This document shows, in pieces, positions 12,169-46,006 of a stretch of 64,000 bases of DNA; positions within the stretch are counted from its first letter, which is position 1; each line of letters starts with the position of its first letter. This DNA is from Phyllobates terribilis (taxonomy: Eukaryota), in assembly GCF_046119375.1 (NCBI RefSeq), contig NW_027366690.1, positions 1-64,000 on the forward strand. The letters are read 5' to 3'. The notes under the pieces are model-generated. The model searched no databases, was not told the DNA's origin, and saw only the letters and a list, made by a program, of their open reading frames with translations. Position numbers and translations under genes: made by a program.

Positions 12169-14079
12169 ATGCCTGGAGAAAGAGAATCCAACCAGCACCT
12201 TCTTGGGATTTCGGTCAACAAACCTCATCTTTTGATCGAGGGTGAGCTAGACTGGTGGATGGCCATGACAAAGAACTACATTCAGCAGACCGACTATCAG
12301 TGTTGGAACATTATCGAGCATGGTGATGAGAAGGTTGAAGCTGCAACAACCGCCAAGCCTTGGGGACCAGTAGAGTACGCTCTAATGGAAAAGAATGCTA
12401 AGGCTCGCCAGCTCATCCTCAACTCTCTTCAGAGGAAAGATATGGACAAAATCATGAGCATCGCTACCGCTCAAGAAATGTGGAAGGCAGTTCAAGAAAT
12501 GAATCAGAGGAGTGATGATATGAAGAACAATCGAAAGTTCGATCTACAAAGGGAGTTTCATTCCTTCAGGATGACTGAATCCGAAAGTGTGTCAAATTCC
12601 CACTCAAGATTCCAAGTGCTCGCTAATAAGATGAGCGCGACTGGAATAGTCACTGAACCATGGTCGCTGTCATTAGCCTTCATCCATGGTGTTAACACTA
12701 AATATGACACTATCAAGAAGATAATGCTGATGACAGAAGCAACCAAGACTCTTCCAGTTGCAACGCTTGCTGGGAAATTTCGAGTTCAAGAAATCAAAGA
12801 CAGCGAGCAAGCCCATTCAATCAAGGAATCAAGAGGAACTGCTCTTAAGCTCACAAAGGTGCTACAACAACTGGAGAGCGAGACCTCCATCGATGAGGGT
12901 GAGGACGCTGAAATAGTGTTGATGACCAAGATGGTCAAAAAGTTCTTGAAAGCCAAAGGTAGCTTCAAGAAGGATCAAGGCGCTAAGCGAGACCTGACAA
13001 ACGTTACCTGTTACAATTGTCAAGAAAAGGGTCACCTAGCAAAAACCTGCACGAAACCGAAGGTCGCTGCGAGCTCTACATCCAGCGAACTTAAGAAGGC
13101 GTTCTTCACCACTTGGGGAGATTCAGATGAAGAACTAGATCTTGGCGAAGAAATGCAAGGACGCTACCTAATGGCCCAAGAAGAATCTGATGATGATCAA
13201 CCTGTTCAGGTATCTTCTATAAAATTAAGCGCCCTTCCCAAACAAGATCTAATTGATCTTTGTCAAGGTCTGATTGAGGAAAATAATTTGCTAATGACTT
13301 AGAATACTGAGTACACTGACGAAATTAACGTCCTCAAAACTGAAACACTCGAGATGACCAAAAAGCTTAAGGGTGAAACGGTTGTCGTTACAAAGTTTTG
13401 TGAACTTTGTAAAGGCAAACGCAACACCCTTCCTTCAGACTCGAATGTTTCAGCTCAACTTGACACAATCCTGGCTGAAATTGACAAACTGAATCAGTCT
13501 ATTGAGGCAAAAACTGTCAACCAAACAGTTTTTGTCCGCTCTAGACCCGGTTTAGGGTATACATTTGAGCTCGCCCCTTCTAAGGACATGTCATTGACTG
13601 AAAAGAACCTTAAACTTTCTCAAGATTTACAGTCTTTTAAAAGTAAAAATGATTATCTGGAAAACAAGATAAGGGCATTTGAACATAACCCAAAAGAAAC
13701 TAAGTGGTATCATGGGGAACCAACTCATAAGATGTATGTCAAACAGGCAAGAACTAAGCCCAAGAAAATTAAGCTTGAAAATCAAGCGCCCTTCCGGCCA
13801 GGAAAGGGTAAGTACGGGTACGTGCGAGGCAACTTGTATTGAACGCACTGTGGCAACAATGGACACAGGGTTCATGAGTGCGCTTCTAAGCAAGCTCTCA
13901 GAGAAAAATCCCGTGCTAGATATGCGCCCAAGCCACATATAATAGTAGACCTGAATGATCCCTCATACTATGACCCAATAGAGCCCAAGCATGCTAATAG
14001 GCCTAAAAGGGAAATATCTAGGGGAGCTACTACTAATCCACCCACGAGGTCTCGGCTTCGATGGGAACCAAAAATCTGA
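12169..14079 (+). pseudogene. SIRE extended gag with two zinc knuckles and two in-frame stops
   Basis: ORFs 12169-13302 and 13354-13842 share one frame, which continues *THCGNNGHRVHEC...WEPKI* to 14079. First knuckle CYNCQEKGHLAKTC. Confidence 0.85.
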
Positions 14080-14097
14080 TGTTTCTTGAATACAGGT

Positions 14098-17000: not shown

Positions 17001-17608
17001 TTGTATTTGTTGTGAGCTTATGCGCGAGAGCCCAGAGCGACCCAAGGGCCAGTCACCTTCAGAATATCAAGCGGATTTTCCGTTACTTGAATGGCACTGA
17101 GAACCTATGTCTTTGATATCCTAAGGGAGGCTCACTGTCTCTCATAGGGTATTCAGACGCTGACTACGCCGGGTACCTCGTGGATCGCAAGAGTACTTCT
17201 GGAATGGCCCAATTCCTGGGTCCCTCACTCGTCTCTTGGGTCTCAAAGAAGCAAAACTGCATAGCGACCTCGACTACGGAAGCCGAATACATTGCAGCGG
17301 CCCTTTGCGCGTCCCAAGTGGTTTGGCTCAAGCAACAATTGGTGGACTTTGGCTTCACGCTTGGCACTATAGAGATCTGATGTGACAACACGAGCGCCAT
17401 CAACATGTCCGAGAACCCTGTCCATCATGCGAGGACCAAACACATTGATGTTCGACATCACTTCCTTAGAGATCACGTGGAGAAGAAGAATATTAAGCTC
17501 ACTTTCTGCAGAACTGAGGAGCAGGTCGCTGACATATTCACCAAGCCTCTAAACAGGTTGCCCTTCCTCCACCTAAGGTTGCTTCTGGGAATGATCCCTA
17601 TTGACTGA
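14098..17608 (+). pseudogene. SIRE pol (PR-INT-RT-RNaseH), single frame broken by four in-frame stops
   Basis: ORFs starting at 14144, 15623, 16832, 17180 and 17405 are all in the same frame. Begins near WYIDSGCSCHM. Confidence 0.9.
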
Positions 17609-23225: not shown

Positions 23226-25826
23226 ATGCACCTCAACCGCCTCTGCTACATCCTTCCGGCGGACTCCGACATCGGTGACGAAATTTCCTCTAAGAAGAAC
23301 CCCGCCGGCGCCTTACACCTAAACCGCCTTACCTATGTCCTGCCGGCAAAATCGGAACACCGGCAAGAGAAATCGAGCCGGAATTGCAACGATCAGATTG
23401 TTGCTCTACTAAACAGGATTGTGAAGCCGCTGAATTTCTGCAGCGGAATCCGGAAAAAGCGCGGGAGACCGGGGAGGTTTAGCGGCGCGTTCCATGACGC
23501 GCCGGGGATGCGGCTTTCGAGGAGGAATAACGGAGATAACAACCACGCGAATAACAACAGTCCAAGGATATTCAGCTTCGCCGAGCTGTACATCGGCTCT
23601 AATGGATTCAGCCAAAAAGAGCTGCTCGGAAGCGGGGGATTTGGAAGAGTCTACAAAGCCGCTTTGCCGAGTGACGGCTCTCTAGTAGCGGTTAAGTGCT
23701 TGGCGGAGAAAGGAGAGCATATCGAGAAGACTTTCGCGGCGGAGCTTGTGGCGGTGGCTCATCTCCGCCACCGCAACCTTGTCAGGCTACGCGGTTGGTG
23801 CGTCCATGAAGATCAGCTCCTACTCGTCTACGATTACATGCCGAATCGAAGCCTCGACCGCTTAATTTTCGCGCCATCAACAACGAACCAGAAGAACCGC
23901 GACACGACGCTAGATTGGGAGCGGCGGAAGAAGATAATCCGTGGCCTAGCCGCTGCGCTGTACTACCTCCATGAGCAGCTGGACACGCAAATCATCCACC
24001 GTGACGTTAAATCCAGCAACGTCATGCTCGATTCTCACTTCAACGCCCGTCTCGGCGACTTCGGCTTGGCTCGCTGGCTCGAACACGACTTCAATTCCAA
24101 CCCTAATCCTAACTCCGACCACACTCCCAACGGATTCGAACGAGTCTCGTCTCAATCCAGCCTCACTTCAAACTCAACATCGGTGCTAGATCACCAATTC
24201 CGCCTCGCTGAAACAACAAGAATCGGCGGCACAATCGGATACCTCCCTCCCGAAAGCTTCCAGAGAAAATACATCGCCACTGCCAAATCGGACGTTTTCA
24301 GTTTCGGAATCGTCGCTCTGGAACTCGCCTCAGGAAGACGAGCAGTTGATCTCGCGTACCCCGACGATCACATCGTCTTGCTCGATTCCGTAAGAAGATC
24401 AGCCGACGAAGGAAGCCTCTTACAAGCAGCGGATTCTCGTCTTCTCGACGGATCCTATTCCCTTTCAGAAATGGAAATCTTGATCCATTTAGGTCTCCTC
24501 TGTACCCTCCACGACCCCAAATCCAGACCTAACATGAGATGGATAGTCGAAATGCTTTCAGGCAACGTCATCGGTAAGCTTCCATCTCTCCCAAGCTTCA
24601 AATCACAGCCCCGATACATCTCAATCTCAGGCTCCACCACCAGTAGAAGCAAGATAACAACCTCCTCCTCCTCCGACAAACCTCCAACACCATCAATCTT
24701 CATCACAGCAACCACCGACACCCTATTCCTCACAGCTGAACCGGAATCAACCACAACCGAAAAATCCGGCATGATGAAGGGCTCGAGCGCTGGCAGTAGA
24801 CGTCACCAATTCAACCCTATCCCTACAGTAGAAACCCCAAGAGAAATCTCCTACAACGAAATCGTCGTCGCCACCAACAACTTCTCAGACGAACACCGCG
24901 TAGCCGAAGTCGATTTCGGTACCGCATACCACGGAACCCTCGAAAACCGACACCACGTCATAGTCAAAAGACTAACCATGAAAACCTGCCCTGCATTACG
25001 AGCTCGTTTCTCCACCGAGCTCCAAAACATCGGCCGTCTCCGCCACAGAAACCTAGTACAGCTCCGAGGTTGGTGCACTGAGCACGGAGAAATGCTCGTA
25101 GTCTACGACTACATGGCAACTCGTCTGTTAAGCCACATCCTGTTCCACAACAACCACACGTGTCTGACGTGGCGCCAGCGCTACAACATCATCAAATCAT
25201 TAGCCTCAGCGATCCTCTATCTACACGAGGAATGGGACGAGCAAGTGATACACAGGCACATCACGTCAGCCTCTATAGCGCTCGATCTGGACACGAACCC
25301 AAGACTGACAAGCTTCGCGCTAGCCGAGTTTCTGACGCGAAACGAGCACGGGCATCATGTCGAGAAGGATTCGACCAAGTCGGTTCGGGGGATATTCGGG
25401 TACATGTCGCCCGAGTACATGGAGTCAGGGGAGGCCAACACAGCTGCTGACATCTACAGTTTCGGTGTGGTGGTGGTTGAGGTTGTTACTGGTCAAATGG
25501 CTGTTGACTTTCGTCGCCCTGAGGTTTTGCTTGTGAAGAGACTACATGAGTTTGAGTTGAAGAAGAGGGAAATGGAGGAGCTCGTGGATCAACGATTGGA
25601 TGGTGAGTATGATCGGTTTGAGTTTAGTCGATTGGTGAAGCTCGGGTTGGCTTGTACGCGGTCGAAGCCGGAGGAGAGGCCGAGTATAAGGCAAATTATG
25701 AGCATATTGGATGGGAATGATTCAGGGTTTATACAGGGGAAGAAAGAGAAAGGAGATGAATGGAGGCAGAGGAATGCTGCTGCATTGGCTTTGACTAGGA
25801 GAATCCAAGCACTTGGAATTCAATGA
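23226..25826 (+). CDS. LECRKS2: Receptor-like protein kinase S.2 type (no lectin or TM domain; kinase plus pseudokinase), 866 aa, intronless
   Basis: Single ORF. Domain 1 has GSGGFG, VAVK, HRDVKSSN, DFG and GGTIGYLPPE. Domain 2 has EVDFGTAY, HRHITS and TSFAL. N-terminus MHLNRLCYILP and C-terminus RRIQALGIQ are typical of the family. Confidence 0.95.
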   Translation: MHLNRLCYILPADSDIGDEISSKKNPAGALHLNRLTYVLPAKSEHRQEKSSRNCNDQIVALLNRIVKPLNFCSGIRKKRGRPGRFSGAFHDAPGMRLSRRNNGDNNHANNNSPRIFSFAELYIGSNGFSQKELLGSGGFGRVYKAALPSDGSLVAVKCLAEKGEHIEKTFAAELVAVAHLRHRNLVRLRGWCVHEDQLLLVYDYMPNRSLDRLIFAPSTTNQKNRDTTLDWERRKKIIRGLAAALYYLHEQLDTQIIHRDVKSSNVMLDSHFNARLGDFGLARWLEHDFNSNPNPNSDHTPNGFERVSSQSSLTSNSTSVLDHQFRLAETTRIGGTIGYLPPESFQRKYIATAKSDVFSFGIVALELASGRRAVDLAYPDDHIVLLDSVRRSADEGSLLQAADSRLLDGSYSLSEMEILIHLGLLCTLHDPKSRPNMRWIVEMLSGNVIGKLPSLPSFKSQPRYISISGSTTSRSKITTSSSSDKPPTPSIFITATTDTLFLTAEPESTTTEKSGMMKGSSAGSRRHQFNPIPTVETPREISYNEIVVATNNFSDEHRVAEVDFGTAYHGTLENRHHVIVKRLTMKTCPALRARFSTELQNIGRLRHRNLVQLRGWCTEHGEMLVVYDYMATRLLSHILFHNNHTCLTWRQRYNIIKSLASAILYLHEEWDEQVIHRHITSASIALDLDTNPRLTSFALAEFLTRNEHGHHVEKDSTKSVRGIFGYMSPEYMESGEANTAADIYSFGVVVVEVVTGQMAVDFRRPEVLLVKRLHEFELKKREMEELVDQRLDGEYDRFEFSRLVKLGLACTRSKPEERPSIRQIMSILDGNDSGFIQGKKEKGDEWRQRNAAALALTRRIQALGIQ

Positions 25827-25907
25827 GTAGCCAAGATTTACATTCCATGTTTTGTATATATTCATGTTCTTAATTCCTGGTGATGTTATTACAGAGTGTA
25901 ATGTTTA

Positions 25908-27113
25908 TTAAGGACTATAGATAGGGATTTCTTCATCCATGTCAAGTCCAAGCCAGCTAGTTAGAGCAAAGAGAAATTCTCTAAAGGTGACACTCCCATT
26001 CTTGTCTTTGTCCATCTCCTCTGGTAAAAGGAAAGAAAAAAACCAATGAACTGTCTAAGACTCTAAATTGGCACAGAGAAATGAGAAACATTGTAGTATA
26101 GAGAGCGCGACGTACTGAATCGAGTCCTAGTGACATGAGCAGGTGACTTCTCCCATGGAGTATCATCAAGAGAATTGATCATGTCTCTTTTGTTAATCTT
26201 TCCATCTTTGTTCTTATCCATATACATGAAGGCTTCAATCATTGTATCAAACGTGCCTTCTAGCTCACCGAATCCCGTTTGAGAACTCTGAAACCAATCA
26301 CATACTCATTCAAAAATTGATAAGGCTGTTAGTGAAGAATGCAATGGATAAGAGTGGGAGGAAGTACAGTGTCATTAGAGTTAGATGGTTTAGTGAGGAG
26401 ATAGCAAAGGCAAAGGAGAGTTGCAAATCCATTGAAGTTTATCCCTCCAATCCCTTTGCAGTCACATGAACAGAAAAGATCGTCAACATCCTGCTCTGCT
26501 AGATTAATCTGCAACTTCTGTATGCATTTTTCGAGCTCGTTTCGGTTGATAATTCCATCACCATTCTCATCTGAGAAATGATAAAAGGTAGTAATTCAGA
26601 TTGCATAATTTTTTCGAAGTGTTCTCTTTTCGGAAAGGCTCGAGGGATGTGGTATGTAGGAACTACCGTATTGCTGAAAAACAACTCTAATGTTGTGAAG
26701 TTGATCTTTAAAATGAGGAAACCTCAAGATCAGGCCGCTCATCGATCTGAAGTATTTCTCTGTAGAACATCTTTTTCTTGCTTCAATAATCTTCTTTTCA
26801 ACTTTGGCATCCAATTGTTTGTACTTATTTGTGTTATTTCTTCGGCAGAATATTTCACCCACTTTGTTACTGAGTGATCTCAAAGCTGGGCATGAATCAG
26901 ATTTTCCTTCAACCACAGAAAGTCTATCAATATAAATACTTTTTTAGTTTAGTTCGTGAAATATAATTCTAGAAACAAGATGGTAGCTCATAAAAAGCAG
27001 CGTAGGATTATTTGGCTAATCTTGGCATATGACAAGAGTATTAAATTCAATCACCTACATAAGTAGTATAAGAGAGAAGAAAACATACCACTTGAAGATG
27101 AAAATTTCTCCAT
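25908..27113 (-). CDS. CML22: Calcium-binding EF-hand protein CML21/22 family, ~250 aa
   Basis: Exons 27113-27089, 26906-26667, 26570-26368, 26287-26116 and 26020-25908 have GT-AG junctions with consistent phases (753 nt). Motifs include KYKQLDAKVEKKIIEA, DENGDGIINRNE, DKNKDGKINKRD and DKDKNGSVTFREFLFA. Confidence 0.88.
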
Positions 27114-27452
27114 TTTTCTTGAGGTAGGAAGGAAAATGAAGGTACCATACAGATAGGCAAAGAAGAAGGAAAAGGCACCTAAACAATGGAGGTGAATAAA
27201 GTAACAATAAAGCATACTAAAGAAAAAAAAAATACTGTATTTGGTTCTTTCCCAATACTAGTGGAAATATGCCTTCGGAAGGATTTGAGAGGAAGCTTCG
27301 CCTCTCTTAATATGTATGCAAAAGAATTGGGCACTGACATACTGAAAAACGTGGAATAAAAATGACAGAAATCGACTCATTAAGTTCGAAATTGCTATAC
27401 AGATAGATGATCATGTTACATTTCAAGAGAAATTCACTATACTTAGCTCATC

Positions 27453-28983
27453 CTACATAGTACTCATCATCCAACCAACTTCACAGTCATGCATATTTCC
27501 CTCTGTAGGCATAAGTTCTCCGTGACTAAACACCGGTCTTGATCGTTTCTTGACACTACAAGCTAGAGGAGAAATTGGACTTCCGATTGAAGTCAAGCAG
27601 CTATCCATTGAACAATCACCAATTCTGATTGGCATGTTGCAGAAGTTTCTGTTTACGTTAACGCCAGTTAGATCAGCAAAAGATGGCATTTTCAACTGTT
27701 CAGGAATTTCCCAACTGTTATTACACTCATTGAAAGCCTTGATTGCCATATCAGAGAGGTGTTCGCGTGTAGTTTCAAGCCCGGCTGATGCTAAAGCGTG
27801 GTCATTCATGACTTTGAAAGCTTTATCCAGCATTAATTGAAGGTATTTGCCTTGTGCTTCCATTTGAATCTGGAGATGGCGCTGGACCTATTGACGTAGA
27901 TTTAGTAATAAGACACAATTTCAAGAAGGGAATTGGTAATGCAGAAGAGATTACCTCCAATTGCTCATGTAATCTTCTTTGAACTTCCATTTGCATCCTT
28001 AATGCTTCAGTGACTTGTACACCACTGTTCAAAGACGAAACAAGAAATGAGTTCAGGCTTGTCATTTGTTATTCAAAGTCTCCTCAAGAAAATTCATGTG
28101 ACATACTCATTTGACTCCTGGGAGATTGCGTTTGGTGGTGGAGATGATGGGGAAACATTTTCTTGAGCTTCTGCGTCAGAAGTTGCTAGTCCTAATACCC
28201 AAGGTGAAGATATTAGATTATACAAAAAAATACCCATGAAAGGCACCAAGAAAACAAGATGAAAGATCAATCATTACCATCTTTTGAGTTTTCATTCGCT
28301 TCCTTGTTGCATGTTTGTCTACCTAAACGGTATTTCTGCAGTAGCGTAGGACAATGAAGAACATACTTAGCAAATTTCAGAGCATCATCTTTTAGAATTA
28401 CCAAACATGTCATAGCTCTGCATGAATATAGAGTTACTCAAAAAGACCAGTGGAATTGAAAGAGAAGGCTTTATTAATAGAATACCTGAAGATGAGACTT
28501 CAAGTGGTATAAAGTAAGGCCCTTTACACCCATTGTTCTGAGAATGGTCTTCGGCGTGGCTTCTGCAAATAAAAGAAGAAAGTAAGGAGATGAATTAAAA
28601 AGCAAGAAAATCATGGACGTATTATGATCTAGTGGATGTAAACCCTAGCTTGCAAATGAATGAAATTCACGAACAACGAAATAAATTGAGCGAATTGACT
28701 CAATTACGAATGAAAATGAGCATTGATACAGAGGGGCACCAATTTGAAACCGAATGCAGTGAAATTGAAGAGGACGGAGATAGAGAGAAAGTGGAAACTA
28801 ACTGTCAGGGCCACCGAGCTGAGCGACGGCGTCAACAAATCGATCATGGAGATCAGGAGTCCAACGGAGACGAGGCCTCGGGTCAGAGGTCAACACCACG
28901 CAAGCTTCTCCTCCTCCTATTCCACTCATTTCCTGCAATCCTAGCGATTCCATGCTAATACCACCGGCCATTGCCGAAAACAT
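27453..28983 (-). CDS. MYB-CC (GARP, PHR1-like; PHL2/PHL3-like) transcription factor, 301 aa
   Basis: Exons 28983-28803, 28562-28486, 28335-28278, 28191-28107, 28024-27955 and 27887-27453 total 906 nt in frame. Motifs VLTSDPRPRLRWTPDLH, LYHLKSHLQKYRLG and LHEQLEVQR. Confidence 0.93.
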
Positions 28984-29764: not shown

Positions 29765-32700
29765 ATGCTGTTCTTCTTCTCCTCCAGCTCGTCAAGAGGT
29801 ACTTCTGTTCACGTTTGTTAATTGTTTGATCTGATCTTCTATTGCACGTACGCCAGATTGTAAGATAAAAGCATGAGTTGTGATGTGATATTTTCGTGGC
29901 AGCGTATTCTCGGCGATGTTGTACATTCTTCTCAACCGCTCACATTGTCCGGGATGAGCCGATTCTGGTTCGGTTTTCATCTGATTATGCGATTGTATTT
30001 GATTTTGGTGGAAATTTTTAGTTTTTGATTGTTTATTATGTGTATAATAGGTTCGCGATTTCATACATTCAGCACTTTATGACCCAAACCACGGCTACTT
30101 CTCTAAAAGTTCTGCTTCAGTTGGTGTTCTCGATTCCAGTATCAAGTTCCATCAACTTCAAGGTCTAGATTTCATTTCCTCCGTTTTTCCTGTTTCTGTA
30201 TGCTCCATCCATATTCCATTGACTGATAAACCATCTGATAGGCATATTGTCTTATTGAATTATTTTATTGCTTGCTCAAATGTATAGTAAATTGTCTCCT
30301 CGTGTACTGAACTTGGAAGAACTCAGGCAGGAAAGCGTATTTGCATCATTTGGATAAGATCTATAAGCAGAGTGACACATCTTGGTTTACACCTGTGGAG
30401 CTTTTCAAGGTATTTTTTTAATGAAAAAGCTTCTTAGATCTTACTGTTTGAAGATCTCTTATGATACATATCTAGGCGGCATAATATGGACTGTGATTCT
30501 TGTTTTTCCAAAATGTTTTATATACTCGATTCTTATACTTGAATTGCTTGTGGCAGCCTTGGTATGCTCATGGAATTGCTGAAGCTATTATGCGCACTGC
30601 TAACCTATCAGTTCCCCTCAAAGTGAGTTCTCCTATCCACTTTCATTTTCTCAGCTGAAGCTGCTGAATACGTTTTATTCTTATCTACTTGTAATCTATA
30701 TCTAGTCTGTCATTATCACTTGCTTTTGTTCATAGTTTTTCATTGAATATTTAAATGTTGAGACGCTTCAAGATATTATGCTGTGAACTTATATGTGGCT
30801 ATCACTTATCAGTATGCTCTTCCGACTTATGCCTTGCTCTACCTAAGCACATCCTGTATCTTCCGTTTCTTTTATTGCAGATATATGAAATTGGTGGAGG
30901 GTCTGGAACCTGTGCAAAAGGCATAATGGACTACATCAAGTTAAATGCACCTCAACGAATTTATGATAGTATGAAGTACATGTATGTAACCTGATACGAT
31001 ATCAGCTAAGTCAGATTATCTAGTTTGTAAATTCAGTATTTCTTTGTATTTCTTGTTAATTAAATTAGGAGTCAGCATTAGAAATTCATGATAAATAATT
31101 TCAGGCAGTTAAGTTAGTAGTGGGATAGTTTGAGTTAGTGGAAGTAGAGGGTTAGTGTTCTCCCTAATTTGGTATTTAAGGCCTGTTCCTTTCAGTTTGT
31201 AATCATTCTTGAATTAATGAAAGAAAAGAGTATGTAGGTGTTCCTACTCAATATCTGGTTTCACCAGTGGTTTCCTCTTGGTTAGTCCTACCTTATAAGA
31301 AACTTGTCAGGGGAAAGTGGAAAAACTGAAGTTTAAGGTCCCGCTCAATTGTGATAGCTAAGACAACTTGCTCATACAACGGAGCACTTTCTTGAATGTG
31401 CAAGTTTGACAATTTGATAGGAATGCAGTTATCTTTCCTACTTAATGCAGTTCAGTAGAAATCAGTTCATCACTGGCTGAAAAACAGTTGGCAACCATCG
31501 GCCAAGTTTCCAGTCACTTGTCAAAATTCGAAGTTGAACGCCGGGATGCAGCTGACCGAAGTGGATGGGGTATGATTCATCTATGCTCACTTATCCCCCT
31601 TTTTATTGGGCGCTACTTTTTTTTAATATTGATAAAAAGTTCGATCCTAGAATATCTCCAATAATTTAGAAAACTGCTTTTAACAGATAATTCTATAGGA
31701 CATAATCTTCAGGCTTGCTCCTCTTTGCAAGATTTACTATGGCTCTAAATTCTCCATTCAAACAATCATTTCATTTACTACTTCTGAATGACCAATCTAA
31801 TATAAAAGCAAGTTATCAGATCCATTGGGACATATCCCGACTATATGAACTCAAAGTTATATTTTCAAGCACATTCTCACTCAAGAGGATTGTGGGTCAT
31901 AGATTGTGTTACCATCAGTTGTCCCATTCATCCCGCTTTTGGAAATGTGCCACTGAACTTAATTTTTTATGTTTTTATGATTATGTACCTAATTTTCATG
32001 GTATTTATTTTATTTTTACTCTTAACTTGGTATGCAGGTGATGTTCAGCAACAACCATGCTGGGTGATAATGCTTGAGGTTTGCGATTTCGGAACATATT
32101 ACTTTTGCATTACAAGATAGCACTTCAGCTTCTATTTAACAAGAAATAGTTTTACCGTTTACAGTTTGATCAGCAACTTATTTTTCTAGGTGTTAGATAA
32201 TCTTCCTCACGATCTCATCTTTTCTGAAGATCAAGTTTCCCCATGGAAGGAAGTGTGGGTTGAGAAGCATCCGGATAGGTAGCCATAAAAACCTAACTTC
32301 TCATATGCAAATAACATATCTTAGTTCTCTTGTTCACACTGTAGTTTTAATCTCCCTTTGCATTGCTCTACATTGACAGATTATTACCTTCTGAGCTGTA
32401 TAGATCGGTACAAGATCCACTAATTAAACGTTGCATGGAAATATTAAAATTAGAATCTACAGCTGAAGGAAGCGTGTTGGCATCTTATGCAAAAACATTT
32501 GGGCTAAAGTCTCTCCCAAGCCTCGAAGATGCTGGCTACCAACAGGGTGCTTGGTAGGTAGTGTAATTTGTAATATTATGACTCTAATTAATGTCCTTGA
32601 TTTTATTTTAAGGTTTTTGATATTCTTGGATGCAGAAACTGATGGATGCCCTGCATAGTGCTGTACCTAAGATGTCTCTTATTGCTTCAGATTTCAGTTT

Positions 32701-34023
32701 TCTTCCTGATGTCAGATTACTAGGTCACGGAGCTCCTTTAGTTTCTAGTAAGGTATTCAATTTTCTTTTCTAATTCAGTATCTTTTAGTGAACGAATGAA
32801 AGAAACCAGCTGCAAGTCTAATACATAATATGCACACTCCCTTATTGTCCTTTTTCCTTTCTTTGCTTAATTTAATGATCACTGCTCCATTTTTTAGATA
32901 ATTAACCACTTAATAACTAGTCATGTTTTCCGTGCTTAACTTTGTGTTTACAGCAGAGAAGATGTGAAACTATAATTGTATATTAATAACTTTGTGCTTA
33001 ACTTAGTTACTATTAATTGAATTGTTACTTTTTTTTTAATTTTTCCTAAATTCTGCAGACTATTGGAGTCTGTGTTAGTTTTCCTAGTTTGCAGTTAGTT
33101 AACACCATCCTATAGGAGAGTTACTGGGGTCTATTTAAGCCATTTTACAGTAATCTTTGTAATGGGTTTATGAATTATCAACAGAAAAGAGTGTCCGTGC
33201 ACTTTCCTCTTCTGATTTTACTCACATAGAGTGGTTTCCTTTAGTCTACTCAAATGTTATTTATCAACTTCGGTAAAACTTGTTGTAATATGATGTCTGC
33301 TTTCAGGATTGTTTCTATCATTCTATGGTAAATATTACATAGAGAGTTGTCTGAATCAAATATTTGTAAATAGAGACTATAAAAGTTCTTTTAAGTTTCT
33401 AAAATCAATCTCATTTGCAAATGAAACTCACAGAAAGGTGGAAGCAGTTCGGATTATGACAGCTACCTTGAGGCAAAGGTAAGCTTCTTAATTCTTATCA
33501 TGTAGACTTGCCTTTCTTCACGACAGACAAACCTGCATCTAATTCCATTTCATAAGTAAAGATATCATAAGTGCAACTGAGCATGCACATTTCACTGACG
33601 ATGGGTCTACTTATTATTGTTGCAGGGTGATGCTGATATATTCTTCCCAACAGACTTTTGGCTTCTAGAACAGATTGACCATTACTGCTCTAAAACACCG
33701 AAGGAAGAAAAATTAAAGCAGGGAAAGAAGAGGCGGGCAATGACTGTAAGTTAAGCTGTATACTTGTTACAACTGATACAATACAATGATTTTTTAGCTT
33801 TTGTATAACAAAACTCTACATTTCTTTTCTCAATTCTTTTATGTTTTTTTGTAATGTCTTTCACCTTCAAATTTTGCATACAATACAGCTTGATACCTCT
33901 GCGTTCATGGAAGAGTTTGGACTGCCTTCAAAGACGAGAACCAAAGATGGATACAACCCACTTTTGGATGACTTCAAAAACACAAAAGTTTATATTAGTG
34001 TTCCTACACATAACACTACGTAG
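29765..34023 (+). CDS. NDUFAF7: Protein arginine methyltransferase NDUFAF7/MidA homolog, mitochondrial; one apparent frameshift in exon 10
   Basis: Exons 29765-29798, 29903-29967, 30051-30162, 30327-30409, 30557-30622, 30881-30981, 31451-31569, 32038-32078, 32190-32278, 32380-32553, 32636-32752, 33434-33478, 33626-33745 and 33889-34023. Motifs VRDFIHSALYDP, WFTPVELFKPWY, IYEIGGGSGTCA, EVLDNLPHD and GDADIFFPTDF. Exon 10 is 1 nt short at the A5 run 32491-32495. Confidence 0.9.
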
Positions 34024-34838
34024 TAATCACTGGCTACTCTCCAGGTAAAGAGTACTCTGACTCGTACACTTCGAAGAAAAGAATATGAGAAACAAATAAA
34101 AAAAAGTTTCTTTCTCCTCTTAATGTTAGGAGTGATCTGAATCGTGATTTTCGAATAATTATATTGTCCTTTTGTTCTGTGAAATTGGTCAATTGTTTTG
34201 TTTGTATCTTGATTGTGGGATGACACTAGTAATATCGGGAAAGGAACAACTTTCAGTGATGAGCTGTGTACACTGTAGGCCCATATACCATGTAATTACA
34301 AGACAACCTTCCATTAAATTTAGCTATGTGTTCTTTTTCCTTCATGTAATCTTCTTTCTATTGAAGCTTCAAATCACTTGTACGAGTGTTATCATCAAAA
34401 CATATGTCAAGTGTTTATGAACTGCCTAGTTCAAGCTGAAGAACTGTATCAAAAGAAAAAGGAAAGAAAAACAAGCCATACAAGCTGAAGAAGTTGACCT
34501 TTGCAAACAAAAACATGGGATGGACCCTCTTCATTGATTAATTGTTCCTCATGTTTAATCATCTCTGACAAGTCAATCTTTTCCCTCCTTTTGGCACATT
34601 ACATTACATTAAATTGGGGCTCGTTGACCTTCCTAACATTCAAATATATATTTCATACCCTTACCCTACAGACAAAAAACATAAACTAGCTCTTATCTGT
34701 ATGGCATTATTCACCTCTGATTTCAGTGCCTAATACCAAAGCATTGCGACTAATCTGTGCTGGTTTAGATGTTTCCTTAAGTGCATTAGACTTGTCTATA
34801 AACCAATAATGTTTAACTAGAGAAGAACATCAAACGGA

Positions 34839-35997
34839 TCAATTTGCGGGGATGGAAGTCATTATCTGTTGCACTGAGCTCAGTATATCATCTGCTTCAA
34901 GCCTTGGTTTGCTACCAATCTGCACAAACACAACGAAATTGAATAATCTGCCCGAGTCTAATTAGAAACTGATATAATGAATATTCTTACTAGACACACC
35001 TTAACATTGAACAAGTAAAGAACAGTTTGATCAATGGTGGTAACATTAACATGGAGGATAGCAAACTCCAAATCTTGAAGTCCTGAAATAGCTTTAATCA
35101 ATTGTCCATGCCTCTTCTTCGTTAGGATCTTGATAAAGGCATTGAAACCGACGAGCTTGACTTCCACATCAGCAATGGCAGACTTGTTCCCTGCTGTTTC
35201 TTCATGGATTTCAACTAGACCAGAATTAGCCGAAATTTGGTAGGTGTTTGGACCAAAATACTGGCTGTTCGAAAGAGGCACACTGAGTCTTCGGCGTTTT
35301 TGAGACTCGAGAGATTGAAGGAGTTGCTCTAGTTCTCTCACGAACTCTATTGCTCCTCCTACTATTGATGCTTGATCTCCCTGAATAGATTTCAGTACTA
35401 TAAACATATAACTTATACATGATTCTGAAATAGAAACTACATAATGCAACCTCATAATAATTCATAACTCATAATATATGCATATAGAGAAAAGGATAAG
35501 TTTACCCTTTGGAGATAGGAGGCAGGCATGAGGGAACGAAGAAGGTGAAGACGCTCATTCATTTGCTTCCTTCTATTCCTTTCCACTGCAATGTGAGTCA
35601 TCCTTTGATTCTCTGCTTCCTCCCTCGTCTTGGCAGTTCGTGTTCTTCTCCTCTTACTATTTTTGCTTTTCTTTTTCATCACTGAATCCAAATAAGTAAT
35701 AGTAGTAGTGGCGGTGTTGTTCATCGTCATTATATGGTTTAGACTTCCACTTGCACTCAGAAACTCAAGAATGTAGCTATCATCATTAACATTCACATTC
35801 TCTCCATGATGATGCTCTTTGAGGGAGAATGGAGATCTGAGCATGTCAACAGGATCAACAAGTGTTGCATCTTGTTGATGTGAAATGGGCCTCGAACCGA
35901 AAGTATTAGGGGTTGATGGAGAGGAAGCTGGAATCATAGTGGAGTAGTTTAACTCAGACAAGGTTGGAGGAGCCATGGCGACAGCTGCCTCTAACAT
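34839..35997 (-). CDS. FAMA: Group Ia bHLH transcription factor, FAMA-like, ~317 aa
   Basis: Exons 35997-35506, 35380-35000 and 34919-34839 are in frame. [16 protein letters not shown]...[19 protein letters not shown]; FAMA-type C-terminal domain [15 protein letters not shown]...VLYLFNVKI. Confidence 0.8.
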
Positions 35998-36691
35998 GAT
36001 GATAAGTTTTTCAGAGCACAAAAAAAGGGAACTTTTTTGGGGAGTTGGTGAAGAAGAAATGAAAGAGGAGGAGGAGGATGACAGATAAATCTTAGTTGAA
36101 ATGACTTGTCAACGAAAAACATGGAGACAATGCAAGTCATGAATGTTAAGAAGCCTAGAGATGGAGTTTGTATATATTGGTGTAACTAGTATATAACTGT
36201 TTACCGAGTGCTTGTCTTGTTTCTCTATTTGGTACAAAGGACATATAAATAGGGATGGATGGGTTAAATCAGTAAAATTTATAGGGTAATAGGCTAATAG
36301 CAGTTGAATTTTGATAGCAAGCTTTAATACCAAAAGAGGGACCTACCTCATGAAAATTTACCGAGTGCTTCTCTTATTTCTCCATTTGGGTGTACTTTCT
36401 TGAAAAAATGACATATATAGAGGACTGAGTTAAACCAGTAAAACTGGTGGGTATCAATTGAAATGAGAACAAAAGTTTTTAATTTTGATGGTAAGCTTCG
36501 ATTTCGATAGAGGCCCTACTTAATGAAAAATAGTCTCTCGCTTCGTCTTCTTTGAATTATTTAAGCACGGATTCATGTCACTGATTAATCTAGATCCTTT
36601 CTTATAAACGTCTACCTGTAGAAGAAACTTAATTATGAGTTGGTAAATTTTTGTTTATCAATAAGTTGATAACAGAACAAAACATTACATG

Positions 36692-37031: not shown

Positions 37032-40000
37032 CTAGGACAATATAAGTTCAAATGACTGGGGAGGTTGAGGGTCATCGTCAACATCCATTGATGCTACAGC
37101 CTCACCTGAGGCTTGCTGTGAGGGAGCAGTAGCGGATCCGCCCACACCAGATGAAGATAAAACCTCAGGCTCATTGGGACGCAAGTCTTTCAGTAGAATG
37201 AATCCTGAACGTGCCTTTGTAACTGGAATATATCTGCTGTCTGACAAAAACTTGATAAATTTTTGCTGAGCTGGGATTACTCTTGCAGGGTTTGTTAACA
37301 ACTCAAATGATGGCTCAGCCTCTGCCTTCGAACTTGTACTATCAACCTAACACCATAAAATGGTACCACATAAACAATGCAAACAATTGTCCTTCTAGCC
37401 CAACTCATGTCTAAAAAACTAGTCCAAAATTACTACAATAAAATTGTGGAGAAAAAGTTGTTTAATTTATGCCATGTTATTCATAGTAAAAATTAATAAG
37501 GGTAAAATCGTCCAAAACTTCATTACCTTAATTCTGATGAATATCTCTAAAACAACATCTAATTGTGAACAGAGCGAATGTTACCTGAGATTACTCCTTC
37601 CCTAAACACCACTTTTCCAATTTCCAATGGCTATTCAATACGAGCAATTGTGGGAAACCCGATTCTCCTTAAGCTTAATATACGGAGGGAGTAGTTTTTC
37701 TTACAAAATGTAAAGTTTGTACCTGCATTGAGTCGCCATCCTTTACACCAGAAGCTGCTTTGTTTGCTCTGGCATTTGCCTTTGCTGAGACAGAGAGAAC
37801 AGCGGGTGGAAGCTTCAATGGTGATGTGGCAGCAGGGAGAGTAGTTGGCTTAGGGTACTCAAACAGGGAAGGCTTTGCATGAGACATGAACTCAAACTTG
37901 GGAGCTTTCAGATCATAATTCAGCCCAATGAATGCAGTTGGTGAGAACGCTAAGCTAATGAAGTAAGTGAGAGGGTACCAGTACCAGAACTGGCTAAACA
38001 CCGCCAGACCAACTACAGCTGTCACTTTATCATGCTTACTCTTCGAAACCAATCTGATTGTTACATTTCTCCCTCCTGCATCAAGTATTCCTGACGCCAA
38101 AATTGCTCCCATTTTGCTCATTGCGTCTTCCTTCTTGTCAACAACTATCTTCTCAAGCTGTTTCCTGAATGTTCCAACACGAGGGTGATTAGTCTGGAGC
38201 ATGACCATGGCCATGGCAATGAGAGCACCTTGACGAACAAAATCCACCAAATCTGATGTTAAGGGTTCGAGCAAAGATATTGCTTGACTTAAACATGTAC
38301 CAGCACAAGAGATCCCAACTGCTAGGGCTGCTCCATATCGGACATGAGGGTTGTGTGATTCTGATAGTAATGAAACAATACGTGGTGTCTGCAGATTAGA
38401 GAAGGAATTTAGAAGCTGCGTTATATTCTACAAGTAACAGAGTATCTGGAGGTATGCATGAGACTCAGAGAGAAGGGACAGACTTACTTGCTCAGGCTGT
38501 GAATAGAGGAGAAAACCAAGCCCCATAACTGCTGTTCGCTTAACATCATCATTCGCATCGTTGACAGCAAAGTGCAGAAGCTTACGAATGGCATTACTGT
38601 TTGATGTCCCCCTATAAGCCAATGCAACTGCGTAAACTCCACCATATCTTATAATCGGATCTTGATCACTACTCATCTTCTCAATCAGTTGATCAGCTCC
38701 TTCTTCCATACCGTAAGCCACAAGTGCTATACCTAGAGCTAAACCCCTGCCATCGCAACATCAGTTACAATGAGAAAGATGAAGGATCATTTGATTGCTT
38801 TGGAAGGGGGAAAGAAAAAGGCATACCGAGTGACCTTCTCATGTCGAGTTGCTCGTGCATAAACAAGCATCTCAAAAGCCTTTGAACTACCATTACCAAC
38901 CAGTAGTAAACCCATAGCTATACCAGCTGCTTCTCCAGCAACAGCACTATCTGTAAATAATACAGTTTTTAGATCGTCGTATATACCTTCATCAGAAGTT
39001 CCAAGAGCAGCTAGACCCAGACCCAAACAGCCCCCATAGTGAATAGCCTCGAAGTTGGTATTGCGAAGTCTATCACGAAGGAACTGAATGATGTCCTCAC
39101 CATGGTTGGCATGAATTAAACCAAGGGCATACAGAGCTCCACCCTTATAGTAAGAATTACCACGACGAGTCTGAAGCAAGTAAGATGCCATTATGGACCT
39201 ACCCTTTTTGAAATGGCCCCTGTGAACAACACCCACCCCAGCCATTGCACTAAACGCAGCCCACTTAGTTGCCTTGCTAACCCAATCCTGTCATCAGCAA
39301 TGGATTGTGAAAAACTGAATTTCATAATGCAAATAAACTAAGGGTCCATTTGGCCCTCAACTTAATGTCACCATTATAATAATTTTTTTAAAAATAAATA
39401 CTTTTTAAACTTTGAATTTCGTGTTAGTAAAAATAAAAGAAACTCGTAAAAGAATGACATTATAATGTGTGTTAGTCAAACTGCATTTTCTAAAAAAAAT
39501 CATTATAATTGAAATGTCATTATAATGAAGTTAAACAAACAAGGCTTTAAAATGATGTATAGTGTAATTATGTAACTTAAGGGTATGTTTGGCCCGCCTA
39601 CCCCATTATAGAGGGGGTTTGTAAATAAGTAATTATTTGTAATAATATTGTTTGGCTAATGGTACTTGTAATGGTATTATAAATGATTTAATAGTTAATT
39701 TTTTGCACAATCTCCGATGTCACAAAAACTCTTTTTTTTAATGCCATTATATAACAAAGAGTTACTCCATCCGTCCTTTTTTTATTCTTCTCCTTTCTTT
39801 TTCATACACTATTCATAATTTTACAGATTCTTCTCCATTTCTCTCGATATATATGGAAAAACATAGTCATGTTTGATCTTGTTTTATTCGTCTTGACGAG
39901 TACATTAATAAGATATAAATTTTTTATTTTTTATTAATTTAAACTTAAAGATATTTATCATAGAAAACGTGTCTCGATAAATGTGTCAGGAGAAGGGTTT

Positions 40001-42351
40001 ATATTGTAACACAAACTCCAAAGTTCTAAAATGCCTTATTTTAAGTACTATGTCCCAATATCTTTTTGCAATGCTAATGTAAATGCACGAAGACACCCTA
40101 CAAGTGTACAATGAGTTGAAAAAATATTAGCGTACCAGATTCTCTCTAAGGAAGGTATTTATTGTAGTGCCAGCATGCATGATTGCGTTTGCATAAATGG
40201 CTGCACTGTGGCACACACTATTTTTCATCTCAGCAGACTGCTTAATTGTCTTCAGAATAAGAAGATCCGACCTATGAAAGAGAAAAGCATGGTCATTGAG
40301 GGAAGTAAAAACAGAAAACTTTATGATATTGAACTAAAAACAATTGTACGTATAAGAGTATCTCACTTGTTATGACTGCGCAAAAACTGTAATGTTAACT
40401 GAATAGACGTCTCTCCAGACAATATTTCTTTTATTTTTGTTAATCTCTCTGCATAAACTGCTTCCCTGGGATCTATTGCTTGCACAGTTCCAGCAGAATC
40501 TTTTCCCTGAATCTTGGGATTTGGAAGCAGATTCTTTACATTCAACAAGACTGTTGAGTGTCATTATCTACAAGATCAAAGGCTATTTGAAAAGCAGCCA
40601 AAGCAGCATTCTTATTATCAGAACGTAGAAGCACATTCAATATTCTGGCAACAGTTTTAGTTTATCCAAAAACATGAAACACTGGGAAATGATCAAATAA
40701 TCAGGATTCTGGACCTGCAGATAAGCCATTACAGCCTGAACAAGGACCTGCAACCAGTAATTTAAGATGACAATCATGACATTATATAAAAAGTAAATAT
40801 TCTATGGAATATACTATGATTAAGAAATCTAATGAATATAACTAAGGTAGTAGTATATTGACGAAACATCAAGAATATCTATCACCTCTTGTCTGTATTC
40901 CCTCTGACTAACATATGAATGCGAGACAATGATACAGTAAAAAAATGCTGCACGAACATCATTACTCCTTGTTATTGCTTCCTCAAGTTTATCCAATCTT
41001 CTACATTCAATGATCATCCCAATAGCTTGCTGGTACCTTGCATCCGAAATGCAACTAAAAAAATGCAGGTGATTACTGATTAGTCAATCATTTACGAAAT
41101 ACAGTTAGTAATTCTAAAGTAAAGAAGGCCATACTTTTCCAGTATTCTTTCCACAATTTCTTCCAACCGAAGATCAAAATCTGATAGTTCTTCACTGGAC
41201 TTGGCATCATTTTTCCTAAGACTAACATACACATCTATAGCTTTGTCTAACAGAACATAGACAAAAAAAAAACAGAATAATCAGACCCTTCCACCTCTAA
41301 GAATGTTACAAAAATCAAGTAGCAGAATCGATGGTATAAAAGTACTGTGGAAGAAACAAAACCTACCAAGAAGAGCCCGGGTGTAATCAGAATCCTCTGA
41401 AACATCAAATAGAGAGCCCGCTCTCAGTGCATATGTCAAAGAGTCATTTAACTCGCCCAGATAGTAGAAAACCTGAGGAGAAGGACAAAATGACAACACA
41501 ATGAGAAGGGGACTCAAATCAAAGTGGAAAGATAAGCAATGCTTGTGTATGAATTCTTGGAAGCGTAAAGATACACAATGCCTTTTTTACCTATACCTTT
41601 GAAGCAACAAGGGCAGCAAGCTGTCTTTGAGAGAAATCCTCATCTTCATACAAACTTTCTCTGCATGTAATTTTGAACTTGAGAATCCGAACTTTAAAAC
41701 CAATATTCCAAATGTTGGAACTAGAGAAGACATAGATCTTACATAGACTCAGAAGTTATGTATAAAGTTGTGTTAGAACATGTACATGCAGGTTTGCTTC
41801 ATGTAATTGAGCGCAAATCAATACCTCTCGAACCTATCCAGACTATACAATTGTGCTGCCACAGTTACATAGTTTTTAAAGACTACGACCTCAAAAGTAA
41901 AAAAATGTCCAAATTCCCTCAGTTGGATAGCTCGAAGCATTGATCAGATTAAGAAGAAATTCTTGAAGCATGCAGAATTCATGTGTTCTGTTACAGTGCT
42001 AACTGCTAAGGTCGGACCAGCCCCAAGATCTCCTCAAACTCAAGAACCTTAGAATCTTTAACCTCAAAACTTACGGAATTACAATCAGCACAACTCCCCC
42101 CAATCAAAGCGACAAAAGATATCAAATACAACCCAAATTTACGAGCAACAAAGCAAAAAATGCAGATCAACTGAAAGCCGAAGAAGCGGAAGAAGGAAAG
42201 GGAAGTACATTAGAGGAAGGCTGGTGGAAATCTCGGGCCAGAAAAAGTGAGCAAATGAGTTGAGGTTGGAAAGTGCGTGAAGCTTGAGAGCAGGATGATC
42301 CTCGCTGAGCATCGCCAACAGAGCCCCAGCGGAACTCACCATCGTCGCCAT
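37032..42351 (-). CDS. RPN2: 26S proteasome non-ATPase regulatory subunit 1 (RPN2), diverged, two apparent frameshifts in exon 6 (pseudogene or assembly error)
   Basis: Exons 42351-42209, 41660-41597, 41472-41367, 41246-41135, 41054-40886, 40747-40367, 40271-40136, 39287-38827, 38746-38488, 38388-37723 and 37346-37032. PC repeats ([41 protein letters not shown]) and QFWYWYPL. Exon 6 is 2 nt short of phase. Confidence 0.9.
39339..39550. mobile_element. Tourist-like MITE in RPN2 intron 7
   Basis: TAA+GGGTCCATTTGG on the left, CAAACAAGGC(T)+TAA on the right, and internal symmetry (cattataataattttt / aaaaaatcattataat). Confidence 0.45.
39763..39990. mobile_element. Stowaway MITE fragment in RPN2 intron 7
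   Basis: TA+CTCCATCCGTCC left TIR. The right TIR was not found and the end is approximate. Confidence 0.4.
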
Positions 42352-42576
42352 GATTACTTCTCTTACTCAAACTCCTCGACGAACTGAACTTAACTTGATG
42401 ATTGAAGTCGAAGAAAGGCGGTTAAACAGATAGTAGGATCGTCGATTGCACATTATGCTTTTACTTCCCCGTGTTTCTTCGATAACAAGCCAGGCTTCTC
42501 AAATGTTTACTGGGGTTATTAACCGAATTTCTAATAATTACTACTTCCTCATAAGTTCTCCGGTTGCTATAGATAA

Positions 42577-45132: not shown

Positions 45133-45453
45133 TCTGATTAAAGAATATACTTAAATCATATATCAGTACCATAATGTAATTGACGCTAGCCTATCAGAAC
45201 ATTTTGCAAGGTGTAATGAAAAAAAGCTCGAGTTTTTAGTTATATATTAATAGCACGGAGACAAATTAAATCATCTGAACGTAAAAAACAAAAAGGGAAT
45301 TGAAAAGGAGCTAACTGATTCAGCTTGAAACGGCTAACATAGTATATGTTACATAACCAATACTGAATTGAATGGCAGATAAATCAAGCATGTACCGATA
45401 AGATGCACATGATCGATATTTTCTTCAAGTATGTTTTTAATTAGGATTTGAAG

Positions 45454-45870
45454 ATGTAAGGCAAGAGGAGTGTGCATCTTCTTGTTCTTTATTATGTTGC
45501 TGTTTTTTTGTGTGTTGGACATCAGCCTTGGTGTATATTGTGGAGGAGGGCAGAGAGTTGTTAATGGCTCCAGAGGCATGGGGTTGGCCGGCCATTTGGG
45601 TCCAAGCCTCGCCCTGGAGGAGGAGGAGGTTAGGTGGTGGGGAGGGTGGAGGAAAGGATGGTGGTGGAGGAGGTTCTAGCGGTGGTTGGGGTAGCGAAAG
45701 TGGTGGTTGTGGAGGAGGGGGAGGTGGCAACGGTCGTGGTTGTGGCGGAGGAGGTGGTTTGGAAGAAGGGGGCGGTGGTGGCTGTGGCGGTGGAGGAGGA
45801 GGATCTGGTGCTGGGGATGAGGTTGATGGTGGCTGGAGATGAAGATAGTGAGGAAGAAGTCGGTAGGTAG
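45454..45870 (+). pseudogene. Probable secreted glycine-rich protein, frameshifted as assembled
   Basis: A hydrophobic signal-like segment (VCIFLFFIMLLFFCVLDIS, frame of 45470) is followed in another frame by VEEGRELL and a Gly/Cys-rich tract (ORF 45510-45842). The ATG at 45454 is out of frame by a G-run shortfall. Confidence 0.45.
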
Positions 45871-46006
45871 TCTGAAAGTACAACAAAATCACGGATCCAT
45901 CAGATTTTGACCTACTCTTTCTCTTTGATTATGATGGGGTGAATGCACATAATCGATCCAAGAGGTTTATAATAAACGTTTTCTTTTGTTCTCATAAAAA
46001 TATCTG

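Follow-up and report, generated by a model that had tools for sequence, protein, structure and literature searches.

Irreversible guard-cell fate has a textbook mechanism, in which the basic helix-loop-helix (bHLH) factor FAMA uses an LxCxE motif to contact RETINOBLASTOMA-RELATED (RBR). Arabidopsis FAMA (AT3G24140) binds RBR through LxCxE (Matos et al. 2014, PMC4225492), and the engineered FAMA-LGK, which has no RBR binding while still binding its bHLH partner, rescues lethality and gives stomata-in-stomata (PMC4225492). The grass protein BdFAMA, with IxCxE, fails to hold terminal guard-cell fate when placed in Arabidopsis (McKown et al. 2023, PMC9940870), and tomato Solyc09g091760, one of the Solanaceae FAMA-like genes, did not complement the Arabidopsis fama mutant (Ortega et al. 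2019, PMC6828996). Here we analyse a FAMA-type gene on the minus strand of contig NW_027366690.1, positions 1 to 64,000 (the window: the whole 64,000-nucleotide stretch), which encodes LQSLE where canonical FAMA has LQCLE. The loss of the Cys is real and rare, beyond chance variation, and its probable cause is that constraint on a redundant copy has relaxed, rather than a novel way of locking guard-cell fate.

In pocket-protein ligands the Cys occupies a hydrophobic pocket, and its change to Ser is strongly weakening (PMC4421984, PMC2932728). LIN52, with LxSxE, binds p107 at 5.9 µM compared with 0.12 µM for S20C and shows no detectable Rb binding (PMC4421984), while Cys to Ser in E7 of human papillomavirus (HPV) abrogates pRb binding (PMC2932728). 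The window core, L-Q-S-L-E, falls in this suboptimal LxSxE class and is not a canonical LxCxE pocket-protein ligand; it has the same Cys to Ser variant as LIN52 (LxSxExL) and the LxSxE of gamma-HPV and canine papillomavirus type 2 (CPV-2) E7, where affinity is about 50-fold lower. LIN52 compensates by a nearby phosphoserine and E7 by a second binding site; no equivalent of either is visible in the window protein. FAMA-LGK combines Cys to Gly with Glu to Lys; the window gene differs in the Cys alone, now Ser, and as the Glu of its motif is kept, residual RBR binding is possible.

Among plant proteins, grass FAMA resembles the window gene in carrying a natural change that weakens the RBR motif, but there the Leu is altered, the Cys is kept and the protein is the functional FAMA. 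The nearest described analogues are the Solanaceae FAMA-like genes, which are likewise shorter, faster-evolving members of the FAMA clade with a reduced N-terminus and thus a precedent for a divergent FAMA copy. They differ in that they keep LQCLE, show fewer conserved-site changes (14-24) and, on the tree, arose independently. The background on which the first-pass annotation of this DNA drew, namely LxCxE-dependent RBR binding, grass IxCxE, and LQSLE in SPCH-type and bHLH94/96-type proteins, holds.

The gene occupies 34839-35997 of the minus strand and comprises three exons encoding a product of 317 residues; both introns run GT..AG and the frame is unbroken (Table 1). The motif had been read as LQSLE instead of LQCLE in the first-pass annotation, and we agree: the minus strand at 35320-35306, in the first part of exon 2, is CTT CAA TCT CTC GAG, the translated gene model puts the Ser codon TCT at 35314-35312 as claimed, and the unusual helix 1, MNERLHLL, is likewise present at 35562-35539. 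A Pfam HLH match lies in exon 1 (E = 2.3e-7). In exon 2 the Pfam match PF22754, bHLH-TF_ACT-like_plant, reaches 20.5 bits, under the 27.6 cut-off; the ACT-like C-terminal (SMF) domain aligns full length with FAMA ACT-like domains.

The window gene is like Arabidopsis FAMA and its canonical orthologues in clade, three-exon layout, basic region, LESQKRRR context and ACT-like domain. Unlike them, it has Ser for Cys, ENQR for ESQR and a C-terminal IPAN for IHANSSI, and it encodes 317 residues as opposed to about 380-450, with the N-terminal FAMA motifs lost or degenerate. In alignments, the FAMA-specific motif LSFADVMQFADFGPKL is absent from the window protein and a second N-terminal motif, IDPVYFLKFPVLND, is degenerate. 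The ENQR change alters the pre-basic SQR putative phosphosite (EEVESQRMTHI), and is found in the window, Rumex, Amborella and Solanaceae FAMA-like proteins.

A sequencing or assembly error at the Ser codon, or a contig that mixes paralogues in a conserved bHLH stretch, is very improbable. The stretch 35344-35382 is common to several paralogues, and the de Bruijn contigs of relatives break there; moreover, the only sequencing run containing the whole stretch (X1) may be the source sample and hence does not count as independent support. Against an error, all 140 of the 31-mers sampled from 34700-36100 occur in the independently built contigs of X1, and since they span 35313 the Ser base is no obvious assembly slip. 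The flanks on either side of the codon are collinear with the Rumex orthologue, a G/C substitution is atypical of consensus errors, and many other lineage-specific substitutions surround it. An independent run, X2, yields contigs with 0 differences over three stretches (exon 1 and the 5' flank) and none across the motif; these back the window haplotype independently, with the motif outside their cover.

Word-index searches with protein queries (exon 1, exon 2 and a profile including the window exons) found canonical FAMAs about 60% identical from the bHLH to the C-terminus among the matches listed, every one with LQCLE. Two closer relatives came from an exhaustive representative search with exon 2: KAL8172298.1 of Rumex salicifolius (P0356), 80% identical over exon 2, and P0358, the 379-residue product of a Logan transcript contig from SRR18011507. 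Exact-sequence look-ups of the open reading frames (ORFs) of the neighbouring kinase and of exon 2, and of the Beta FAMA, gave no match, and a literature search found no paper on Polygonaceae FAMA.

By tblastx, 22800-45000 of the window is collinear, gene for gene, with the Rumex salicifolius locus. The window is therefore Polygonaceae DNA and the Rumex gene the positional orthologue; judged in this way from its sequence, the whole window is of plant origin. At the motif the Rumex orthologue has LQCLE (TGC) and P0358 has IQCLE (TGT), so that the Ser (TCT) is derived within Polygonaceae, after the Rumex split. LQSLE is thus not the norm of the family; the first-pass annotation had named such a family-wide norm as something that would refute its reading, and the Rumex LQCLE contradicts it. 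Rumex P0356 shares with the window gene its collinear locus, intron positions and derived residues; unlike the window gene it also keeps an 11-residue linker segment, MNEHL, LHTN and LYSFNVK. The H>R and V>L changes in helix 1 belong to the window lineage only, relative to both Rumex and P0358.

The rarity of the change was gauged on fetched proteins. A FAMA-like signature matched 178 of them, of which 7 were set aside (LQSLQ/LQSLE in an FVKELE / GGAIDF context); two of these 7 were placed in a tree and grouped with the bHLH71/94/96 outgroup. Cys occupies the motif position in 170 of the remaining 171 FAMA-type proteins (LQCLE in 155, IQCLE in 12, and VQCLE, HGCLE and LQCLQ once each); the one left over has IQFLE. 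Cys is kept in Psilotum and, among the sampled FAMAs, from ferns to eudicots; a preprint gives a spruce FAMA with Cys. The signature scan missed a Hibiscus trionum ‘FAMA’, GMI64293.1 (P0381), with LEGLE.

Further natural FAMA-clade proteins without canonical LxCxE are this Hibiscus trionum protein, Nepenthes gracilis GMH08025.1 (P0368, HGCLE) and P0270 (IQFLE), a grass-like protein from a Joint Genome Institute (JGI) metagenome. They carry other substitutions in unrelated lineages, and none is known to have been studied; GMI64293.1 is a second, very divergent copy beside a canonical FAMA, P0183. As these three proteins show, the motif is occasionally lost from divergent FAMA copies. Motif-weakened and divergent FAMA copies were already known; one that sits at the ancestral locus and has naturally exchanged the Cys for Ser adds a further variant to them.

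LQSLE is usual in the bHLH57/67/70/71/94/96 group, which raised the question of whether the gene is a member of that group with a normal motif. A careful maximum-likelihood (ML) tree of 53 proteins and 244 columns, with SPCH proper left out, gave an angiosperm FAMA clade with 100/100 support, separate from MUTE and bHLH71/94/96, that includes the window gene, in the arrangement (P0358,(window,Rumex)) with 100/99. Forcing the Polygonaceae trio onto bHLH71/94/96 was not quite rejected by the approximately unbiased (AU) test (-16.5 log-likelihood units, p = 0.063), and a long branch had stood at the FAMA base before Rumex was added. The protein nevertheless carries FAMA signatures, with FVR (not FVK) ELEQ, KRRRL and KSxxADVEV, and its FVRELE...KRRRL context is of the FAMA type; the Rumex positional orthologue has LQCLE, the locus matches canonical FAMA loci in four other families, and P0358, sister of the window-Rumex pair, keeps the FAMA-specific FADFGPKLAL motif. 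Congener C-termini read IHANSSI, as in canonical FAMA, and intron positions are common to the window and Rumex (introns of 125 and 80 nt versus 135 and 80 nt). The AU tests are weaker than the branch supports, and locus, motif and intron evidence fills the gap. Membership of the bHLH57/67/70/71/94/96 group is thus extremely improbable, and the first-pass assignment to FAMA is upheld by the 100/100 clade, with the AU alternative borderline.

Two other placements were set aside. In a first tree, built without Rumex, the gene had branched from the FAMA base with a branch length of 1.0; we take this as a long-branch effect, since the basal placement vanished once Rumex and P0358 were added. Orthology with the Solanaceae FAMA-like genes finds no support in the tree, where these are sister to Solanaceae FAMA (98/89), which would make them an independent duplicate, and the Polygonaceae trio stands apart (100/99); forcing the trio onto them cost 13.1 log-likelihood units, a join that the AU test did not reject (p = 0.18). 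That one lineage is Polygonaceae and the other Solanaceae also argues against such membership.

Position agrees with the tree. The block in the window reads S.2 kinase - CML22 - PHL - DUF185 - FAMA - RPN2, and the gene sits in what corresponds to the ancestral arrangement RPN2 > FAMA < DUF185 - PHL - CML22. PHL and CML22 flank FAMA in Arabidopsis as well (AT3G24110-24140), and in Coffea, Salvia and Cynara the gene immediately upstream of canonical FAMA, in the same orientation, is RPN2. The CML22-PHL-FAMA synteny argued in the first-pass annotation therefore stands and extends to the kinase, DUF185 and RPN2, in collinearity with Rumex salicifolius. On sequence and position together, we class it as a group Ia bHLH gene of the FAMA clade that occupies the ancestral FAMA locus.

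The gene is fast evolving. Divergence was scored on 150 columns with at least 97% identity across 104 full-length canonical FAMAs, which themselves average 0.95 mismatches (maximum 8). With 33 mismatches and 5 gaps there, the window protein is the most divergent FAMA in the sample. Over the same columns Rumex has 24 mismatches and 5 gaps, P0358 has 16 mismatches and 1 gap, and mismatches number 14-24 in Solanaceae FAMA-like proteins, 24 in Nepenthes and 1 in Beta vulgaris. Between the window and Rumex, the FAMA gene shows a synonymous divergence (dS) of 0.37 and a nonsynonymous divergence (dN) of 0.17, with a ratio (omega) of 0.48; the adjacent single-exon kinase gives dS 0.43, dN 0.05 and omega 0.12. 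The Polygonaceae FAMA at the ancestral locus thus evolves, in omega, about 4 times faster than its neighbour kinase. Split by domain, omega stands at 0.90 in the N-terminus, 0.25 in the bHLH, 0.62 in the linker and 0.25 in the ACT-like domain with the C-terminus; constraint persists in the bHLH and ACT-like domains. When P0358 is taken as the outgroup, unique amino-acid changes number 37 in the window compared with 21 in Rumex (chi-square 4.4); those unique to the window include H>R and V>L (helix 1), C>S, GFD>GFN, RRRP>KKRH, LHTN>LHVN, LYSF>LYLF and IHAN>IPAN.

Contigs of four runs from other organisms (X2-X5) were aligned to the gene. An orthologue at about 94% identity is present in X3, X4 and X5. 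The contigs of X5 join exon 1 to exon 2 and skip 34920-34999, exactly at the modelled boundaries, and an X5 transcript contig spans 35505-35997 with a loose end that matches where exon 2 begins. The X5 species therefore transcribes the orthologue and splices it. A 33-nt segment (...DSLMMNM...) missing from the window is kept in X3 and X5, and also in Rumex and P0358, and where the window has its TGA stop X3, X4 and X5 have TCA, ending ...SIHANSSI as opposed to ...SIPAN; both the deletion and the early stop are window-specific. Over 34839-35283, codon differences from these congeners are nonsynonymous in 10-12 cases versus synonymous in 2-6, and most of the nonsynonymous ones are window-specific when judged against Rumex. 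Near the first ATG, the X4 orthologue is without 11 nt at 35986 and 3 nt at 35966; its translation would need the second ATG (window 35976), which makes the true start of the window gene uncertain by 7 codons.

Other contigs in X2-X5 align to 35286-35380 only, at about 88% identity (10-11 mismatches over 93-97 nt). On the coding strand these contigs go on as ...RRRLYGDAT(P/A)SGG..., with synonymous differences between runs (GAT/GAC, ACA/ACG), and KRRRLYGD/E is the standard FAMA continuation. As RRRLYGDAT contigs occur in all four runs, including the RNA-derived X5, the relatives very probably carry a second, expressed FAMA-type gene. In X3 and X4, the second-locus contig also holds a 34-nt piece identical to window 35349-35382, recurring 164 nt after the paralogous copy, which may be a small local duplication in the second locus or a graph artefact.

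Our favoured explanation, to which we give a probability of roughly 0.55, is that the window gene is a relaxed or sub-functionalised FAMA copy with weak RBR docking, tolerated because another FAMA gene would supply the canonical function. In the protein the basic region is intact, and both helices, KRRR and the ACT-like domain are present; gone are the Cys of LxCxE, the FAMA motifs of the N-terminus, 11 residues of the linker and the last 3 residues. The FAMA gene has been evolving several times faster than its neighbours since before the Rumex split, and the window lineage has gained further changes at sites that hardly vary elsewhere: C>S, the helix 1 H>R, the 11-residue linker deletion and the C-terminal H>P with its early stop. 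Its conserved features suggest a protein that still binds DNA and pairs with ICE1/SCRM-type bHLHs. By analogy with animal and viral ligands, the Ser would cost the protein one to two orders of magnitude in affinity for the RBR pocket cleft, and the copy would be poor at recruiting RBR to lock guard-cell fate. Redundancy with the second expressed FAMA-type locus seen in relatives would leave the window copy relaxed or moving toward sub-functionalisation. Of the two alternatives offered in the first-pass annotation, an RBR-independent FAMA and a relaxed or sub-functionalised copy, the latter is the better supported, by the rate data and by that second locus.

Several points weigh against this explanation. 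The omega of about 0.25 for the bHLH and ACT-like domains means that the gene is not freely decaying, and a specific retained function, even the main FAMA function, is possible. The AU tests leave the alternative placements formally unrejected (p = 0.063 and p = 0.18). The effect of Cys to Ser is extrapolated from animal pocket proteins, and in Arabidopsis Matos et al. tested the double C>G, E>K change only (PMC4225492). The codon comparison with congeners covers 34839-35283, short of the Ser codon; the second FAMA-type locus is seen in contigs of related species; and the RNA evidence comes from the X5 relative.

A rival account makes the window gene the plant's only working FAMA, on which guard-cell differentiation depends, with terminal fate locked under a weakened or absent FAMA-RBR contact, for instance by FLP/MYB88-RBR, by sustained expression of FAMA or by some other surface that binds RBR. 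The gene does sit at the ancestral FAMA locus, its bHLH and ACT-like domains are under purifying selection (omega 0.25), its orthologue is transcribed and spliced in a relative, and grasses cope with a weaker IxCxE, possibly by sustained expression (PMC9940870). We nevertheless consider it unlikely: a second locus in relatives continues canonically as ...KRRRLYGD..., RNA-derived contigs included; no FAMA in the sample diverges more than the window copy, which has lost N-terminal FAMA motifs and C-terminal residues; and Beta vulgaris, of the same order, has a fully canonical FAMA. Quite unlikely is the further proposition that the gene is the only functional FAMA with a compensating mechanism evolved within Polygonaceae after the Rumex split, as a natural analogue of FAMA-LGK.

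At the other extreme, the gene may be disused in the window's species, a pseudogene in waiting whose C>S change, deletion and early stop are neutral decay. The window-specific lesions at otherwise invariant sites, the 3-codon truncation and the 11-residue deletion point that way, as do the excess of nonsynonymous differences from congeners and an exon 3 about as divergent as intron 2 (13 of 81 versus 11 of 80 positions against X3). The window sequence is in none of the RNA runs, which is not evidence of silence. Speaking for continued use, the ORF is intact, splice sites are canonical, every indel is in frame and the basic region shows no change; against X3, just 9 of 284 positions differ in the ACT-like part of exon 2, compared with 14% in the intron. 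Silent decay is therefore a rather unlikely account, and we retain that of a relaxed or sub-functionalised copy.

A natural Cys-less FAMA at the ancestral locus and a confamilial orthologue that bears the Cys form a ready-made pair, which bears on how much RBR docking one Cys to Ser removes in plants and on the fate of a FAMA copy once the RBR-docking constraint is lifted. The fast-evolving Polygonaceae FAMA also gives the puzzling FAMA-like genes of Solanaceae an apparently independent parallel. Should there be a canonical second copy, as we expect, this is ordinary relaxed constraint after duplication, and the importance of the finding is modest unless the window gene proves to be the plant's only FAMA.

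The features of the gene and its neighbours are collected in Table 1.

Table 1 Features of the window FAMA gene and of the genes around it.
Feature	Position	Strand	Details and evidence
Exon 1	35506-35997	-	Residues 1-164: divergent N-terminus, basic region, helix 1; ORF and GT donor
Exon 2	35000-35380	-	Residues 165-291: helix 2, LQSLE, KRRR, linker, ACT-like domain
Exon 3	34839-34919	-	Residues 292-317 and stop; C-terminus ...SIPAN, congeners ...SIHANSSI
LQSLE at the RBR-binding LxCxE (LQCLE) position	35306-35320	-	CTT CAA TCT CTC GAG
Ser codon TCT	35312-35314	-	Rumex TGC, transcript P0358 TGT at this codon
Helix 1 MNERLHLL (canonical FAMA MNEHLRVL)	35539-35562	-	
Basic region, same as canonical FAMA	35563-35604	-	Alignments
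Degenerate remnant of N-terminal FAMA motif IDPVYFLKFPVLNDK	35815-35859	-	Alignments, canonical exon-1 fragments, conserved-column comparison
Site of in-frame 33-nt (11-residue) deletion relative to X3 and X5 congeners	35224-35229	-	Contig alignments
Stop codon TGA	34839-34841	-	Congeners TCA (Ser), stopping 3 codons later
RPN2 (26S proteasome regulatory subunit)	37046-42440	-	Directly upstream, same strand; Pfam RPN2_C, PC_rep; tblastx to Cynara, Solanum, Coffea, Salvia, Rumex
DUF185 / Methyltransf_28 methyltransferase	29870-34020	+	Convergent with the FAMA gene; Pfam, Rumex collinearity
PHL-type MYB-CC factor	27440-28983	-	Pfam Myb_DNA-binding, Myb_CC_LHEQLE
CML22-like EF-hand protein	25895-26935	-	Weak Pfam EF-hand; Rumex model has EF-hand_7
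S.2-type receptor-like kinase, two kinase domains	23226-25826	+	Pfam Pkinase in two stretches; rate control

The Rumex salicifolius locus contains Cyt-b5, RPN2, FAMA, Methyltransf_28 (convergent), PHL with CML22, and the kinase, which in the window is 89.7% identical to its Rumex counterpart. An asterid origin of the window, suggested by an Asteraceae-like ‘LYGD.TP’ in the paralogue and by Lamiales among the top BLAST hits, was dropped in view of the Rumex collinearity. From asterids to Caryophyllales, RPN2 and FAMA adjoin on the same strand, with RPN2 upstream. The Solanum pennellii gene directly downstream of RPN2 is the short FAMA-like copy; this position is shown there for FAMA-like and not for canonical FAMA, and in Lycium no gene was found within 10 kb. 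The RPN2-adjacent FAMA-like gene of Solanum pennellii bears on how the FAMA-like genes of Solanaceae arose.

The public Rumex model KAL8172298.1 (503 residues; L007:10001-13949, JBMGZU010000001.1) is mis-spliced at its 3' end: it skips the donor of exon 2 as well as exon 3 and reads on into the antisense strand of the DUF185 gene. Remodelled on the window exon structure, the Rumex gene encodes 350 residues, ending ...SVQQIITSIHLMFFSDCI. The Rumex annotation at L007:16906-20261 merges the PHL MYB-CC and CML22-like genes into one 569-residue model; in the window they look like two adjoining minus-strand genes. Elsewhere the window holds two Ty1/copia-type retrotransposon bodies with gag, integrase and reverse transcriptase ORFs, at 12169-17608 (plus strand) and 54022-59422 (minus strand), the latter split over several frames. 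At 45437-45892, past the Cyt-b5 gene, a proline-rich low-complexity ORF (PPPP runs) overlaps a Gly-rich ORF on the opposite strand.

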